DNA from: Podarcis melisellensis
Taxonomy: Eukaryota
NCBI GenBank assembly: GCA_964234715.1
Contig: OZ174275.1
Strand: one strand, 5' to 3'
DNA: 64,000 bases
The notes beneath the pieces were generated by a model that was not told the DNA's origin, searched no databases, and saw only the letters and a list, made by a program, of their open reading frames with translations. The translations under genes were made by a program, and so were the position numbers. This document shows positions 10,330-61,794 of the stretch, one piece after another (position 1 is the stretch's first letter; each line of letters opens with the position of its first letter).

Positions 10330-10424
10330 CAATGCACGAAGCCTCCAAGAAACTGACAGAGTGTTTGCAAGAAGTGTATGAGCCAGATTGGCCGGGAAGA
10401 GATGATACTAACAAAATATCAGAG
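10330..10424 (+). CDS. BIN1: BIN1 exon 4: (A)[31 protein letters not shown]
   Basis: ctccaag|CA ATG...GAG|gtgagg; 95 nt, phase 1-0; AAG acceptor. Confidence 0.97.
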
Positions 10425-17998: not shown

Positions 17999-18166
<168 letters not shown>

Positions 18167-40778: not shown

Positions 40779-40907
40779 TTGCGGAAAGGTCCTCCCGTGC
40801 CGCCACCTCCAAAACTCACTCCGTCCAAGGAGATGAAGCAGGAGAACATCATCAACCTGTTTGATGACAATTTTGTCCCAGAGATCAGTGTGACAACCCC
40901 CTCACAG
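40779..40907 (+). CDS. BIN1: BIN1 exon 13 (CLAP): [43 protein letters not shown]
   Basis: catgcag|TTG...CAG|gttagc; 129 nt, phase 0-0; proline-rich stretch and FxDxF (FDDNF) motif. Confidence 0.96.
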
Positions 40908-45236: not shown

Positions 45237-45347
45237 TTTGATGCCCCTGGGCCCTTCCAGGAGGGAGCCAGCCTGTTGGATTTTGATTTTGATCCCATTA
45301 AACCTGATAACAGCCCTGTAGGGAAGTCGCCTACGCCTGCTGCCCAG
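45237..45347 (+). CDS. BIN1: BIN1 exon 14 (CLAP, clathrin box): [37 protein letters not shown]
   Basis: ctgcaag|TTT...CAG|gttggt; 111 nt, phase 0-0; AAG acceptor. Confidence 0.94.
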
Positions 45348-46638: not shown

Positions 46639-46662
46639 TCTTTGCCTTGGGATTTATGGGAG
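46639..46662 (+). CDS. BIN1: BIN1 exon 15 microexon (W-box): SLPWDLWE
   Basis: gcttag|TCT TTG CCT TGG GAT TTA TGG GAG|gtaaga; 24 nt; PWDLW clathrin W-box. Confidence 0.95.
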
Positions 46663-47676
46663 GTAAGATTTCTATTAATATAGCTTTCAGTGCAATAAAT
46701 TCTACCATGTGGTGCTTGGCATGTGTGAGTACTTCCTTCTGTCATTATCATGCAAAGATGATTATTCTTGCCTTGACCTTCTGTTCTCATCCTCTTCAGT
46801 GCTATGAACTAAAGTGGTGTGGTACAGTTGCAACCTCTTCTGCCCTTTGTCTGTCATGCTGAGAAGAAGTCTCCATCCCCTGTGCTTTGATATTGCCTAT
46901 TATTAATGGCATTGACTGAAGCACAAACCTTCTTGCTGCAATAATTGTAGACCTTGCTGCTACTTTTTACCTTGTCAAAAAACAAACAAACCCCTGCATG
47001 CCATTTCCTACCTCTCAATTGTGTAGTATGCATACTTCTCAACTACCACCAAACAATCCCTTATTCTATACATATATTTAGTATAATGCTGTGCTTGCTG
47101 ATTTGCTGCCGTGGTTCACTAATAACAGAGATTGGAGATCTCTCCAGTACTGCTGGAGAAATGAACCTTTCCTCCTTTCTTATTATGCTGCCAGATATTA
47201 CGCTGTAATAAATCAGTTTAAAAAGCCAATGGCTTGTAGTTTCCAGACTTTCTTCATAACATTTTGGGCATGTTGAGATATACAGCTTTGCTTGAGTCCA
47301 CCTGCTAGCAAGTGACCTTTATTCTTTGCTTTTGTGCATTTCCTGATGTCTTTATTAATTCTATATCTTCACAGAAGGATACTTCTTACATTCTAAGTTA
47401 AAATTTACTCATTTGGCTTACTTTATCTGCCATCAGATATCTTTTGAGGTGTGATTGGCCTTTAAAAAGAATTGGCCTACACTGGTTTCCCATTGTAAAT
47501 TCATCAAATTGTCTCAAGAAGTTGACTCCTTTGTCTTTCCTGACCCAAGAACCTTCACTATTACTTCTTCCTAAGCATTTTCTCTGCTGTTTTCCCTCCC
47601 TTTCCTCCTCATGTAAAGGTTTAGTGAATAGATTGTGTCCTCAGGATAGGTAGCCATTAGATTTAGATCAACCACC

Positions 47677-48419
47677 CCAGAAAAATGGTGCGCTGGGGAA
47701 ACAAGCACCATATTTCTTCAAACAAATGTGTATGAATCTCCCCACCTTCCATTATTTTCCATTATTTTCGTTCAATGAATATATATATTCATTGAAAATA
47801 TATATTATCACACAGCAGGGTTTAACTGCACCAAAACATATAGCAGTCCAGTGAGTAAAGAATTGCTAGCTCAACCACCAAATTATCTGATTTAAATCTA
47901 AACATCATTGAGTACTGTATTACCAAAACTTCAGTTAAAGGGAAGTGCAAGTTGACTCATTTCATTCTGTATAAAAGCAACACAGAGAAGCTAGACAGCC
48001 CCCCAAATAAAGAAGTATGACAAGTCTCACCTTGGTTAAAATTACTCAACAGAAGTTCTGGCTGCTGATTCGGTAGCTTGCCACCCTAGTTAAAAAGCTT
48101 ATTAAGCCCGACAGAAGGCATTGTTGTTCAAAATGTATTGTCAATAAAGCCAACCATTAAAGGCAGGAAGTGAGAAAAAGAATTGTAAGCTACTTGTGTG
48201 GGGTACTGTGGCCTGGCACCTTTCTGTGCAGTTGAGAGCAGCCCGATCAGATGAGAGGTTGCAGTGGACTACCCATGTAGCTGTGCCTGAGCAACTGTGG
48301 TTGTTGAATGGAAAGCCAGTGTGCTGTGGCCTCTCTTGCCCAGTCATAGTGTATGTACAACTACTCCAGAAAAATGGTGCAATTTGGAAACAAGCACCAT
48401 ATTTCTTCAAATAAATGTG
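47677..48419 (+). repeat. ~54-bp direct repeat pair (47677-47730 and 48366-48419), each with an internal hairpin
   Basis: ccagaaaaatggtgc-N6-gaaacaagcaccatatttcttcaaa(c/t)aaatgtg present twice. Confidence 0.85.
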
Positions 48420-48493
48420 ATCTATATTTTCCTAGCTTTAGTTGTGGTATAGGATGTTAAATGCCTACCTTAAAGTAGATAGAGATTATGAAC

Positions 48494-48659
48494 CAGTGGC
48501 GTAGTGTGGGGGGTGCAGGGGGCCCCGTCCGCACCGGGCGCAACATCTGGGGGGGGGGCGCTCGCACTCGCAGCTCTCTGCCCCTATTAAAATCCACGGG
48601 GTAGGGGTCGCAAATTACTTGCCTTGCCCCGGGTGCTGACAACTCACGCTACACCACTG
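48494..48659. mobile_element. Young 166-bp hAT MITE (second copy of the 11959 family)
   Basis: Same TIRs and length; perfect 8-bp TSD ttatgaac. Confidence 0.9.
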
Positions 48660-49158
48660 TTATGAACCACCAATGTTTTGCTTCTCTCTGAACTGCAACC
48701 TTTAACCTAAGACATCTTCTGCTGTTATTTGCTCTGCTTGCTTTTGTAATATCCTTATGTCATGCTGACGGCGTGCTTCTGTAGTTATTGCTGAAACCAT
48801 TATTGGCTGAACAATTCATTAATTTCAGATTCCAAATCTAGACGTTTTTAAGTGGAACGGTTTTCCATGAAAGGTCATGTAATCCATGCTGATGTTATCA
48901 CTGTATGTAGTTTGCTTCTTGTCAGGAACTACCTTTAATTCTTTATAGCAGTGTTTTGTTGCTAGTTAAGCATTTACCTAAAAACAAATACATTTAGTGG
49001 TCGTTCCTTCTTTAAACCCCTGCTCCCACCCTCTGCCAGCAATGGTTATTCTTTAATATATTTTTTTAAGGACTTAATCACCTTCCCCCCAGGATCCATC
49101 CAAAATTATGGCACATTTGACTCTTACCTGTTCAACAGTTCTATTTACCCTGGGATTA

Positions 49159-49383
49159 CCGTATTTTTCGCTCTATAAGACGCCCCCGACCACAAGACGC
49201 ACCTAGTTTTTGGAGGAGGAAAACAAGAAAAAAAATAATTCTATGCAGTGAAAGCAGCAATCCTTCTTGCTGTTCTTGCTTCTGTGATAGCTGCGCAGCC
49301 TGAATTCACTCCATAAGACGCACACACATTTCCCCTTACTTTTTAGGAGGGAAAAAGTGAGTCTTATAGAGCAAAAAATACGG
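49159..49383. mobile_element. Tc2-like (Tc1/mariner) MITE, 225 bp, in duplicate copy A only
   Basis: 23-bp TIR ccgtatttttcgctctataagac (1 mismatch); TA TSD; empty site with a single TA at 52826-52827 in copy B. Confidence 0.92.
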
Positions 49384-49515
49384 TATTTCATTGTCTACTC
49401 TGTCTTACTTCTCACTGCACTCTTCTCATTTTTGTATCTTCATGTAACCATGCCTACGACTATCTCCTCCCATCTCTGTTTCTCTCTCCTCCCTCCTTCA
49501 AATTCCGCCCATCAG

Positions 49516-49635
49516 CCGGAAAAGACTCCATCTAGCAGCGGTCAAACTATGGATCAGTTTCCGGCCGATAATCCTAGCAATAGTGCGTTCGAGGTGGACT
49601 GGCCTGACCAGCCCACTGAGACTAAGATCAGCCAA
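49516..49635 (+). CDS. BIN1: BIN1 exon 16 copy A: PEKTPSSSGQTMDQFPADNPSNSAFEVDWPDQPTETKISQ
   Basis: ccatcag|CCG...CAA|gtaagt; 120 nt, phase 0-0; lies between exons 15 and 17; FEVDWP resembles recalled human FAVSWP. Confidence 0.88.
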
Positions 49636-50166
49636 GTAAGTGAAAGTATTTGAAGTGATCGTACATTTGAAATTGTCTTGTTCTGGCTGGTGTGCTCTAG
49701 CACAAGCCTGACTCAGTTGTTATTCTTTGGAATGCATTAGGCGGGGCAAATTTATGACCTCTTGCACCCAGCACTCTTCCAAAGGAATTAGAATTTACCC
49801 ATTCCCTAGGCACAATAGTAAAGCACATCTCCTTAACCGTTTATCTGGACTGGGGGGAAAACTGATGTGGTCTAGTGACTAAAAGTAATAGCTTGGCACG
49901 GAAATTCTAGAATTATTTTATCACTGGTTTTAGGGATTGGTGATCAGCCGTGTACCCATAATAGAGATGCATTGCATCCCTTGAGTTTTTAAAGCTGAAT
50001 GTTCAGAAAACATTGGAGGAGGGTTCTCTGAGTGTTCAACTTAATATTTGAAGGGTTCGATGCCAGCCCACCTCTGCCTGTTTCCCTCTCTCCCAAGGAA
50101 AAGGACTAACTGTGGGGAAGTCAGAATGGGTATCAGGTGGTGAGAGAGTGCTGTAGAGAAACACTA

Positions 50167-51289
50167 TTTTTTTTTTTTGGGGGGGGGAATATTTACTGCT
50201 AAACTGCTTAATAAAAATGCTTCCAGTTTCTTTACAACTGTATGTTTTAGCATTTTTTTTGGAGTTCCTCATAAATCATGTCGCAATTTTAAAAAATTTG
50301 GTGACAAGTCTGCCACTTTTGGAAAAAGGTTCCTACGGTTTATTTACACCTCCAACACTTGTTACTATTGTTTTTATTAATTTTAGCTAATTTGGATGGG
50401 GTCAGGTACCATCTGTAGGTCATTTCCATAAAGTATTCTTTAATCAGATAGCACACTATAAATTTTAAATCTTTTTTTTCATAATTCTTCCCATTTTTCC
50501 ATTTCAATCGGGTAGCCAAAATGAGCCCACTTCACCATCACTTCCTTTACTTTTCCATCTTACAAATAATAATAATCTATATGTTTTTTATAATGTCTTC
50601 TTATTTTTTTAATATTAATTCTTTTTCTAGGTTTTACATCTTTGTATCAAATCCATTTGTTTTTTAATCTAATTTAAAGATTTCATTTAGGTGGTAATAT
50701 TGTAGCCAGTTCATCTCTGTCTGTTTAAGTTCTTTATATCCTTTAAGTTTTAATTGGTTATTTTCTTCTTCTAATATTTCTTTATAGGTGAGCCAATTAA
50801 TTTCCATGTTTTTCTTTTTCACTGCTATTGCCTCTACTGGAGACAACCATCAAGGGTTCTTGGGGTTCCAATAGTTTATTTCTCCCCCATACTGTAAAAA
50901 GTGATCTCCTTATTATATGGTTAAAGAATCCTCTGTGCATTTTGACTTTGTCATATCCAAGATAACCATGCCAGCCGAACCTATTGTCCCGGCCTTCAAT
51001 GTCTAATATATTGGCATTTTTAGTAGTATCCATTCTTTGAGCCATACTAAACATGCAGCCTCTTAATATAATTTAAGGTCTGGCAGTGTGAACCCTCCTC
51101 TGTCTTTTACTTCCATTAACAGTTTAAACATAATCCTTGGCTTTTTGCCCTGCCATATAAATCTAGCCAGGTCTAGGGGCGACTTCACCTTCTGTTGCAT
51201 CCCTTTCTCTTTCGTCTTGCTGCTCGTCTGTCTCAAGATGGCAGCAGCACAAACTATGACCCGACACTGAGCGTGCTAGTCTGGAAGTC
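50167..51289 (-). mobile_element. Degenerate L1-clade LINE remnant (ORF2 C-terminal region)
   Basis: Minus-strand translation gives LARFIWQGKKPRI...RGGFTLPDLKLY and RWYLTPSKL...CWRC...GTF, typical of the L1 ORF2 post-RT and cysteine-rich regions, with stops and frameshifts. T-run at 50167-50178. Confidence 0.8.
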
Positions 51290-52957
51290 TTTCTAGCAGT
51301 GTTTTGTTGTTAGTTAAGCATTTGCCTTCGTTAAATATTCTCAAAGCCATTAAGAGAGGGTATTCTGTAGATCCAGCTCTATGTTTTGTACAACAGCAAA
51401 ACAAACTACCTTGGATGGGATTGTGTAACCCACCCACACCAAAAGACAATTCAATGAGACCTCGATGAGCATGGTGCTGAGGGTGTGTATAGGGAATGAA
51501 TATTCAAATGCACACCTGCACCAGTTGTTCACACAGATGTTTACTCTACAAGTTGATTTCCCATGCTATTTCCTCCTGAAGAAAGCCAGGGGTTGTGGAT
51601 TGTGATACATATTGTGACATCAAAGACCCATATACTGGTGGGATGGGAAAGCTATTTTAGAATCAAACAGCCTGATATAAATGTAACTGATGCAGATATG
51701 GGCTGCCATAACTCAGAGAATCTGCTTTGCATGCAGCAGGTCTCAGTTTTCAATTCCCAGCATCTCCAGCTAGAGCAGGAAAAGACTGCTGTCTGAAACC
51801 CAGTCAGGGTAGACAATGGTGAGCTAGATGGCTTCCTATATTCTGATATTTTCCCCAGAAGGTGTTTGATCCAAAGACACAAAGAAGAGATAGGGGTTTT
51901 AATCTTTATAATACAACTTTTGCAACAAAATAAGCTATACAGTTAGAGTCCAAATAAAAGGAAATGAATATTTTATGACATAAAATAAATTACCCCAAAT
52001 GTTATAAAATAAGATAAACCAAAATATCAGATAAGCTTGTTAAGTCCATACTCAAATTCACCTCACAGTTTCAGGCTTTAATTTAGCTCACTATAGATCA
52101 TATAATCTATATCTATATACAGTATCTACATATCTGTCTGTATATATTTATATATACTGGTAGATAGATATAGATATAGATATACATATTCTGTGACTGG
52201 AAAACCACAGCTTAAAAACAAATACATTTAGTGGTCTTTCCTTCTTTAAACCCTTGCTTCCATCCTCTGCCAGCAATGGTTATTCCTTTTATATATATAT
52301 TTTAAAGGACATAATCACTTCCTTCTGTGTTATGGAATTAAATCTACTGAGATGCTAAATTCAGTGACAAAATTCAAGATGTGGCCCCATTCCCATCTTC
52401 TGCAGCAGAGAAGGTGTCACTGAGACAGCTCAGCACTGCCTTTATAGATTTGGCAGTGCATAGAAGCAGTGAGGGAGAAAGCAAGAGGTACTTAATGATG
52501 GAGGAGGGATTTTTAGAAATATCCAGGGATGCCTTGACAAGGCTAAACCAGGACAGCATCCTCTGGAGAACGGTGCTGCCTGATGCTTGACACTGGCAGT
52601 CTTCCAGGGCAGTTCTACTTGCACTGCCTGTATCCATGGAAGCTCCATCTGCACCCTAACAATCCACTCCATCCCAAGGTGAACTACCCTGGTCAATAAA
52701 TGGAGGCACTTTTGTCAGACCATTGGCTGCAGGGGTAATGTTGACCCCACCTTCCCCCCAGGATCCACCCAAAATTATGGCGCATTTGACTCTTACCTGT
52801 TCAACAGTTCTATTTACCCTGGAATTATTTCATTGTCTACTCTGTCTTACTTCTCACTGCACTCTTCTCATTTTTGTATCTTCATGTAACCATGCCTACG
52901 ACTATCTCCTCCCATCTCTGTTTCTCTCTCCTCCCTCCTTCAAATTCCGCCCATCAG

Positions 52958-53077
52958 CCGGAAAAGACTCCATCTAGCAGCGTTCAATCTATGGATCAGT
53001 TTCCGGCCGATAATCCTAGCAATAGTGCGTTCGAGGTGGACTGGCCTGACCAGCCCACTGAGACTAAGATCAGCCAA
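52958..53077 (+). CDS. BIN1: BIN1 exon 16 copy B: PEKTPSSSVQSMDQFPADNPSNSAFEVDWPDQPTETKISQ
   Basis: Same splice sites as copy A; 118/120 nt identical to copy A. Confidence 0.88.
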
Positions 53078-53280
53078 GTAAGTGAAAGTATTTGAAATGA
53101 TCGTACATTTGAAATTGTCTTGTTCTGGCTGGTGTGCTCTAGCACAAGCCTGACTCAGTTGTTATTCTTTGGAATGCATTAGGCCGGGGCAAATTTATGA
53201 CCTCTTGCACCCAGCACTCTTCCAAAGGAATTAGAATGTCCCCATTCCCTAGGCACAATAGTAAAGCAGGGTATAAATAA

Positions 53281-53317
<37 letters not shown>

Positions 53318-55368: not shown

Positions 55369-55382
55369 TGTTGTTGTTGTTG

Positions 55383-55426
<44 letters not shown>
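55369..55426. repeat. Compound (GTT)n(ATT)n microsatellite
   Basis: Seen directly. Confidence 0.9.
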
Positions 55427-58086: not shown

Positions 58087-58188
58087 CCCACAGAAGCCGC
58101 TCCTGCTGGTGCTGAGGCAGCTGGCAAAGAAGCAGCAGCAGCTGGAGCTGAAGCAGCTAAAACCGAAACTGACTCAGGATCTGCCTCA
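58087..58188 (+). CDS. BIN1: BIN1 exon 17: PTEAAPAGAEAAGKEAAAAGAEAAKTETDSGSAS
   Basis: ttgcag|CCC...TCA|gtaaga; 102 nt, phase 0-0; Ala/Glu-rich like human exon 17. Confidence 0.88.
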
Positions 58189-59194
58189 GTAAGACCATAG
58201 GCAAGGGAGAGGGGTGGTGGCGGTGGGATCTCTTTCTCCCATGTTGCTGGCACGCAATATATAATCACTATTTCACTTAACGCAGTGGGATGGGAACCCG
58301 TCAAAGCGACACTGTTGTAGCTTCTGTTCTTCAAGTAGTACAGAATCCTTGATGGAGGGGCCCAATTTGCTGGGTTGTGACTATTGAACAAAGCCCTTTA
58401 ATTATCTGCAGGTGGTCTTCCAGAAGAAAAATGTCCCCTTTGATGCAAACAGCTAAGCATGTAGCAGCAGCAGTTGCAAGTGGTCTGAGTCAGAAAGAAT
58501 ATCTCCACTGTTCTCCCCAGTCCCAGTTAATCACCACCCTGGCTCTTTCATGTCATCCAACAGCCTTTGTTGCTCTGACAGATCCCTCCAGGCAAACCAT
58601 GAAGGCTAAAAGCACAGAACCCTTTCTCATTTCCCCTCCCTAAGTTTTGATTCCACTTTCTCACCATGTCTGCTTCTGCTAAGAAATTTGGCCAGAGGCA
58701 TCAAATTTGTGGCTCTTACAAGGTCACTGAGTTGTTAGTTCTTGTGCATGAAAATGATGCTGAGGACGTAGAGGTCAGAGGCCACCAAGAAGAAGACAGG
58801 TAGCAATTTCAGATCAAGGAAAGGGGAAAAAAAGATTTAGAAGAACTTTTGCCTCTTACTATGAACCTATATCTCCTCTCACCCTTGTGACAGACACCTG
58901 CTGTGTGTTCCATAATCTTTATACCACCCTGATTTTCCCTCTAATATTTGCCACTGTCTGTGATTCCCTTTTTAAAATTCCCATCTTGTCATGAGTCATT
59001 CTCTTCACCTTAATGGCTACTCTGGGCCATAAATTGTAACATCCACGTGGTGGAGGAAAAACACACAATACATTGGCGTTGAATTTTTGAATAATGGGCT
59101 GAACCAGTTTAGTGCAGTGGGGTCTCATTTTGCCAAGTGCCTTGTTTCAAGTGTTCCTTGTGTTTTCTTTGCCTCCCTTCACTGCTATGCTTAG

Positions 59195-59305
59195 AGCTCT
59201 CTGCCTGCTGTAGTTGTGGAGACCTTCCCAGCCACAGTCAATGGAACAGTTGAAAGTGGAGCCGCTTCTGAAAGGGCTGACATGCCACCAGGTTTCCTGT
59301 TTAAG
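59195..59305 (+). CDS. BIN1: BIN1 exon 18: [37 protein letters not shown]
   Basis: gcttag|AGC...AAG|gtgagt; 111 nt, phase 0-0. Confidence 0.96.
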
Positions 59306-61686: not shown

Positions 61687-61794
61687 GATGAAGGATGGCT
61701 GATGGGTGTGAAAGAATCCGATTGGCTTCAGCACAAAGAACTTGACCAATGCCGAGGAGTTTTCCCAGAGAATTTCACGGAGCGGGTGCAGTGA
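61687..61794 (+). CDS. BIN1: BIN1 exon 20 coding part (SH3 end): [35 protein letters not shown]
   Basis: tggcag|GAT...CAG TGA; SH3 GW and FPENF motifs. Confidence 0.97.

Follow-up and report, generated by a model that had tools for sequence, protein, structure and literature searches.

The BIN1 gene of the lizard Podarcis melisellensis contains two copies of its exon 16, arranged one after the other on the same strand. They were found in a stretch of 64,000 nucleotides (nt) of contig OZ174275.1 (assembly GCA_964234715.1), hereafter called the window. Exon 16A is located at 49516–49635 and exon 16B at 52958–53077, both on the plus strand. Each is 120 nt long, begins and ends in phase 0 and reads through 40 stop-free codons, and an intron of 3322 nt lies between them. 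Since the core splice signals of the two copies are identical, we infer that they are used as two independent cassette exons with four in-frame outcomes, among which the form carrying both copies would be a minority one. We give this reading of the genomic sequence somewhat better than even chances.

The two exons are identical at 118 of 120 positions, and the two differences, GGT in 16A versus GTT in 16B (G9V) and ACT versus TCT (T11S), both change the encoded residue. No substitution separates the 132 nt in front of the two exons, where the AG of the acceptor of 16A follows a long pyrimidine tract, and the same donor, CAA/GTAAGT, is found at both exon ends. Comparison of the window with itself by blastn returned the pair as a match of 443 nt at 98.6% identity (E = 0), which is far beyond chance. 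Searches by blastn and tblastn gave exactly two copies of exon 16 in the 64-kb window, which contains no run of N. The copies are adjacent homologous exons of equal length and phase on one strand of one gene, with intact splice sites, and hence have the defining features of a tandem exon duplication. A preliminary description of this DNA had reported two 120-nt phase 0-0 exons at these positions, their 118/120 identity, the identical 132-nt acceptor regions and donors and the 3322-nt spacing, and re-reading and alignment reproduced each of these points. The same description had let the duplication run from the start of 16A to the end of 16B. The duplication itself stands while its extent has to be revised, as the duplicated units reach further (copy A 48937–49825, copy B 51285–53268).

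The gene is BIN1 and the duplicated exon is, by its position, the fourth exon of the CLAP insert, exon 16; both assignments had been made earlier and are borne out here. The exon at 18047–18154 is identical at 36 of 36 residues to the BAR domain chain of human BIN1 (2fic_A, 62 bits), as compared to 52 bits for BIN2 and at most 47 bits for amphiphysin. The last coding exon (61687–61788) is identical at 32 of 34 residues to the SH3 chains of BIN1 (5i22, 1bb9, 1muz and 1mv3), and chains of BIN1 were the only ones matched. The lizard exon probably also resembles human exon 16, in an F-x-V-x-W-P core. A search of the PDB with exon 16 was blank, the solved chains all being without this exon. Similarly, phmmer with the 40-residue exon against 1.84 billion representatives, which need not carry this exon, gave 0 hits, and a homologous-protein search with the 120-residue open stretch around 16A (residues 76–115 scored) gave no candidate among eligible proteins of 66–210 residues, a range that does not hold full-length BIN1.

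The CLAP insert is encoded by BIN1 exons 13–16 and the Myc-binding domain (MBD) by exons 17–18 (PMC7389646). In the window, exon 13 (40779–40907) has a proline-rich start and a motif of the F-x-D-x-F type, exon 14 (45237–45347) encodes a clathrin-box-like LLDFD, and exon 15 (46639–46662, plus strand), a phase 0-0 exon of 24 nt, encodes the clathrin W-box PWDLW after which 16A and 16B are placed. They are followed by a candidate exon 17, exon 18 and then the two SH3 exons. Exon 18 (59195–59305, plus strand) starts in phase 0 and encodes a part of the MBD. The candidate exon 17 (58087–58188, plus strand; 102 nt, 34 codons, phase 0-0) is rich in Ala, Glu and Gly and has a GTAAGA donor; it surfaced only in a scan with relaxed criteria and is assigned by position and composition only. 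An acidic stretch at about 58740–58800 was also considered for exon 17 and was ruled out by a phase mismatch. The CLAP exons and their neighbours start and end in phase 0, and therefore the reading frame is kept whether exon 16 is skipped or 16A, 16B or both are included.

The duplicated unit is about 0.9 kb in size and thus larger than the exon alone. Copy A (48937–49825, plus strand) measures 889 nt including a private insertion of 225 nt, and copy B (51285–53268, plus strand) measures 1984 nt including two private insertions. Identity between the copies climbs towards the exon: it is about 90% in the far flank and 98.6% in the block at 49384–49825, which contains the exon. In coordinates of copy A, the far flank consists of a block at 48937–48979 with 4 substitutions in 43 positions (about 91% identity) and a block at 48979–49086 with 9 substitutions in 107 positions and 4 gap columns (about 90%). 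The next block, at 49079–49158, has 3 substitutions in 80 positions (96%). Closer in, the acceptor flank at 49384–49515 is 100% identical (0/132), the exon at 49516–49635 is 98.3% identical (2/120) and the downstream intron at 49636–49825 is about 98% identical (3/190 substitutions and 1 indel). The difference between the surroundings of the exon (5/442 substitutions) and the far flank (13/148) is significant (Fisher p = 2.6e-5).

The insertion found only in copy A (about 49157–49385, no strand assigned) resembles a miniature inverted-repeat transposable element (MITE). It is 225 nt long with terminal inverted repeats of 25 nt and TA flanks. A distance of 132 nt separates it from the 16A acceptor downstream of it, and copy B does not have it. 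The family is extremely abundant, with a word depth of 4–5 x 10^5 in genomic DNA runs. Copy B alone contains an insertion of 425 nt (52323–52747), possibly with an imperfect target-site duplication of 7–8 bp, and a segment of 885 nt (51328–52212) that was either inserted in B or deleted from A and shows no clear target-site duplication; neither is assigned a strand. The two units are separated by a spacer of 1459 nt (49826–51284, likewise without strand), to which no similar sequence was found after copy B. The presence of private insertions in each copy shows that the two copies have had separate histories.

Sequencing runs from other samples were used to see the duplication outside of this assembly. 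A run search matched the label of the window, label A (two samples from two studies), five related labels sharing about half of the sampled words, and label G sharing about a fifth. We compared positions 47301–53300 with the Logan contigs of four runs: X3 is an independent sample under label A, X5 belongs to label B, and X15 and X17 come from two studies of label G. These contigs derive from a k = 31 graph, and their depth is not a copy number. Contigs specific to the A-upstream flank and contigs specific to the B-upstream flank are present in all four runs and stop at a homologous point. Those of X3 stop at 49108 (A) and 52777 (B), and those of X5 at 49143 (A) and 52812 (B), exactly 30 nt beyond the position where A and B last differ in the 80-nt block.

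A single contig of X17 covers precisely 52748–53268, the homogenised part, with a depth of 10.7, about 2.1 times that of its neighbours. Most of these neighbours have a depth of 3.4–6.4, the exception being the contig over the B-specific insert (52292–52777) with a depth of 10. In this run the B-upstream contig stops at 52777 and the A-downstream contig begins at 49796. Both overlap the shared contig by 30 nt, which is the pattern that such a graph is expected to give for a two-copy repeat. The exon contig of X3 (1100 nt) has a depth of 14.6 as compared to 8.4–10.5 in its neighbours, a ratio of 1.53 where 1.47 is predicted if 47% of it is collapsed two-copy sequence. The corresponding ratio is about 1.3 in X5 and about 2.4 in X15 (15.1 versus about 6). 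Read depth had been proposed earlier as a check on the duplication, and the flank contigs, the contig ends and the 1.3–2.4-fold depth all fit two copies. There is an (ATT)n microsatellite at 53281–53314, starting about 13 nt past the end of unit B, and a second one at 55380–55426. In X3 and X5, contigs continue past the shared block into the flank on the A side without a break, probably because of the first of these microsatellites.

Judged from these contigs, the duplication is present in the DNA of another individual and under two related organism labels. It might be argued that two haplotypes, or a mis-joined repeat, were laid in tandem by the assembly of a genome that has one exon 16, since the exon-proximal block, at 98.6% identity, is within the allelic range, and since the exon body is collapsed in the short-read contigs and so is not seen twice directly. 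However, with a far flank that is 9–10% divergent, a spacer of 1.46 kb and three large insertions private to one or the other copy, the pattern is not an allelic one, and X3, X5, X15 and X17, which come from three studies, carry both the A- and the B-specific flanks with breaks and depths that fit two copies. The marks of a false duplication, namely an allelic level of difference and a single locus in independent samples, are not seen here. An assembly artefact is therefore very unlikely and largely refuted.

Label G contigs are 2.9–4.3% divergent from the window (15/521, 17/486, 21/483, 44/1050 and 14/391), as compared to A/B divergences within the genome of about 9% in the far flank and 1.4% around the exon. 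As label G has both sets of flanks, the duplication appears to be older than the split of these species. The divergence between species is below that of the A/B far flanks and above that of the exon-proximal sequence, which points to an old duplication with later homogenisation. Homogenisation ends where insertions break the homology, as is expected of gene conversion. The exon-proximal block thus seems to have been homogenised by gene conversion, a conclusion drawn from one genome and from the ends of collapsed short-read contigs. The contigs of X3 break 35 nt earlier than those of X5, and there is a hint that conversion may be ongoing, the A/B difference at 49099/52768 being possibly erased in the X3 individual. 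This individual also carries a G to A change at 49577, which gives S21N in exon 16. The exon variants G9V, T11S and S21N are all located in the N-terminal half of the peptide, and the C-terminal half with its F-E-V-D-W-P element is invariant.

It seems plausible that, in an ancestor shared by the lizard and its close relatives, a piece of about 0.9 kb with exon 16 in it was copied, within the intron that separates exons 15 and 17, to a place about 1.5 kb downstream. After the copying, each unit would have gained mobile-element insertions of its own, and the uninterrupted block around the exon (about 440–520 nt) may have been repeatedly homogenised by gene conversion. It is this repeated conversion that would have left both copies with the same acceptor, branch region, donor and frame. 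In cells that include exon 16, the spliceosome would then treat 16A and 16B as independent cassettes, with neither, 16A, 16B or both in the mRNA. An mRNA with both copies would add a tandem repeat of 80 residues to the disordered linker between CLAP and the MBD.

The independent use of the two copies is suggested by their surroundings as well as by their ends. The two copies share about 320 nt of flanking intron along with the acceptor, the pyrimidine tract and the donor, and therefore exon definition should act equally on 16A and 16B. In the shared flanks, 16A and 16B have equal counts of PTB-, NOVA-, MBNL- and SRRM4-type motifs, and no RBFOX GCATG site is present within 300 nt of either copy. 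Several observations weigh against this picture. The unit-spacer-unit layout is not that of a simple head-to-tail duplication. The copies in the other samples are deduced from contig ends and depth, the exon body being collapsed in the short-read contigs. No run on record as RNA is among the matched runs, and X15 and X17, which had been guessed to be RNA, cover introns and transposons along with the rest, 28–29 of 30 bins in all, at a uniform low depth that is DNA-like. The three exon variants are all nonsynonymous, as would happen by chance about half the time. Stop-creating changes make up 3% of the possible exon substitutions, and the probability of finding no stop in an unconstrained copy is 0.96 at the observed divergence of 1.2% and 0.72 at 9%. 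The intactness of the two copies is thus no evidence of selection, and there is no sign of purifying selection on either of them. Lastly, the two exons have different surroundings from position -132 outwards, where A has the MITE and B the 425-nt insert, and also in the distal introns; one copy could be silenced by such differences.

These last points lead to the main rival of independent cassettes, in which one copy is used and the other is a silent pseudo-exon that is kept intact-looking by gene conversion from the functional copy. Such a silent copy is in line with the finding that intactness does not speak for selection, with the three exon differences, none of which is synonymous, and with the differing distal context, where the MITE lies 132 nt upstream of 16A and inserts of 425 nt and 885 nt lie upstream of 16B. 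As a general point, many unannotated exon duplicates in other genomes are without expression support (PMC9013439). On the other hand, the 132-nt acceptor flank, the donor and 190 nt of the downstream intron are virtually the same in the two copies, and no disabling change is visible in either. We regard a silent copy as possible, at little more than one chance in four. Unlikely, at about one chance in ten, is that the copies are mutually exclusive, such that each mRNA would contain exactly one of the two 40-residue variants (G9/T11 or V9/S11), although mutually exclusive exons classically originate from tandem exon duplication (PMC9013439, PMC5740500). An intron of 3322 nt gives no steric block, as the preliminary description had rightly argued from its length. 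An exon of 120 nt is divisible by 3, so that double inclusion stays in frame and would not trigger nonsense-mediated decay (NMD), and both introns have ordinary GT-AG ends. No docking or selector complementarity was found; a gap-free search for inverted repeats of at least 18 nt that pair with the exon flanks returned only the MITE's own repeats and microsatellite matches. The routes by which mutual exclusion is brought about are a too-short intron, U2/U12 incompatibility, a frameshift with NMD and competing RNA structures. No known mechanism enforces mutual exclusion here. Moreover, only two residues in a disordered stretch set the variants apart, which leaves little to select between, and exon 16 in mammals is a cassette that is often skipped altogether (PMC11297290).

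Mammalian BIN1 exon 16 is a neuronal or astrocytic cassette that is frequently skipped (PMC7389646, PMC11297290), and in mouse cortex it is the most often skipped of the CLAP exons (PMC11297290). The lizard exon is found in the same gene and in the same position as exon 16 of human and mouse, after the PWDLW exon 15 and before exons 17 and 18. In contrast to mammalian exon 16, which is single-copy as far as described, the lizard exon is doubled, with 40 codons in each copy. Among the papers covered by a full-text literature search, none describes a duplication of BIN1 exon 16, in agreement with the preliminary description, whose author likewise knew of none.

Tandem exon duplications are common and well studied as a class (PMC9013439, PMC5740500, PMC8373072), and were found in about a tenth of animal genes in a 2002 survey as it is quoted in PMC9013439. 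We therefore consider this to be an otherwise ordinary event of a common class, here in BIN1. As in tropomyosin, the exons 5a/5b of the SCN alpha genes and the Dscam clusters, neighbouring homologous exons of equal length and phase have arisen by intragenic segmental duplication. Unlike in those systems, nothing enforces exclusion between the BIN1 copies, and the exon from which they derive is an optional cassette in its own right; the lizard copies are near-identical (2 residues apart) and are not functionally diverged. In-frame whole-exon duplications in human disease genes such as dystrophin are a parallel in that the duplicated exon has its native flanks, is normally recognised by the spliceosome and enters the mRNA twice (PMC3982197, PMC7350004). 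However, they are recent mutations and affect constitutive exons, whereas the lizard case is old, fixed, lineage-wide and concerns an alternative exon. With the concerted evolution of tandem duplicates it shares the pattern that A and B are closer to each other near the exon (1.4%) than the species are (about 2.9%), with far flanks at about 9%; the tracts in the lizard are deduced from one genome and from collapsed contigs. The locus can nevertheless be regarded as a small and clean example of concerted evolution, in which conversion tracts stop at transposon insertions.

The CLAP exons define the neuronal isoforms of BIN1, and little is understood about what exon 16 does. A naturally doubled exon 16, the copies of which are told apart by two diagnostic sites, provides a simple system in which to study the choice between identical cassette exons where exclusion is not enforced. 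The lineage also allows one to ask whether doubling of the exon 16 motif alters binding to endocytic partners. Tentatively, and at rather less than even chances, it may be proposed that both copies occur together in a sizeable share of the BIN1 mRNAs of neurons, which would yield an 80-residue repeat with the F-x-V-D-W-P motif doubled and its halves kept identical by conversion. If this is true, the lizard would offer an experiment of nature on the dosage of an endocytic linker motif, in a protein that is tied to synaptic endocytosis and tau pathology.

Two minor observations concern other parts of the gene. In the intron between exon 15 and 16A, a high-copy element of 174 nt is present at 48486–48659 in the window and in X3, and the contigs of X5, X15 and X17 skip it, joining 48485 directly to 48660; as far as these contigs tell, it looks like a species-specific insertion. 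The BAR-domain exon at 10377–10424 (Y-E-P-D-W-P...N-K-I-S-E) weakly resembles the C-terminal half of exon 16, with 7 of 16 residues identical (tblastn E = 0.09), a resemblance which is probably due to chance.

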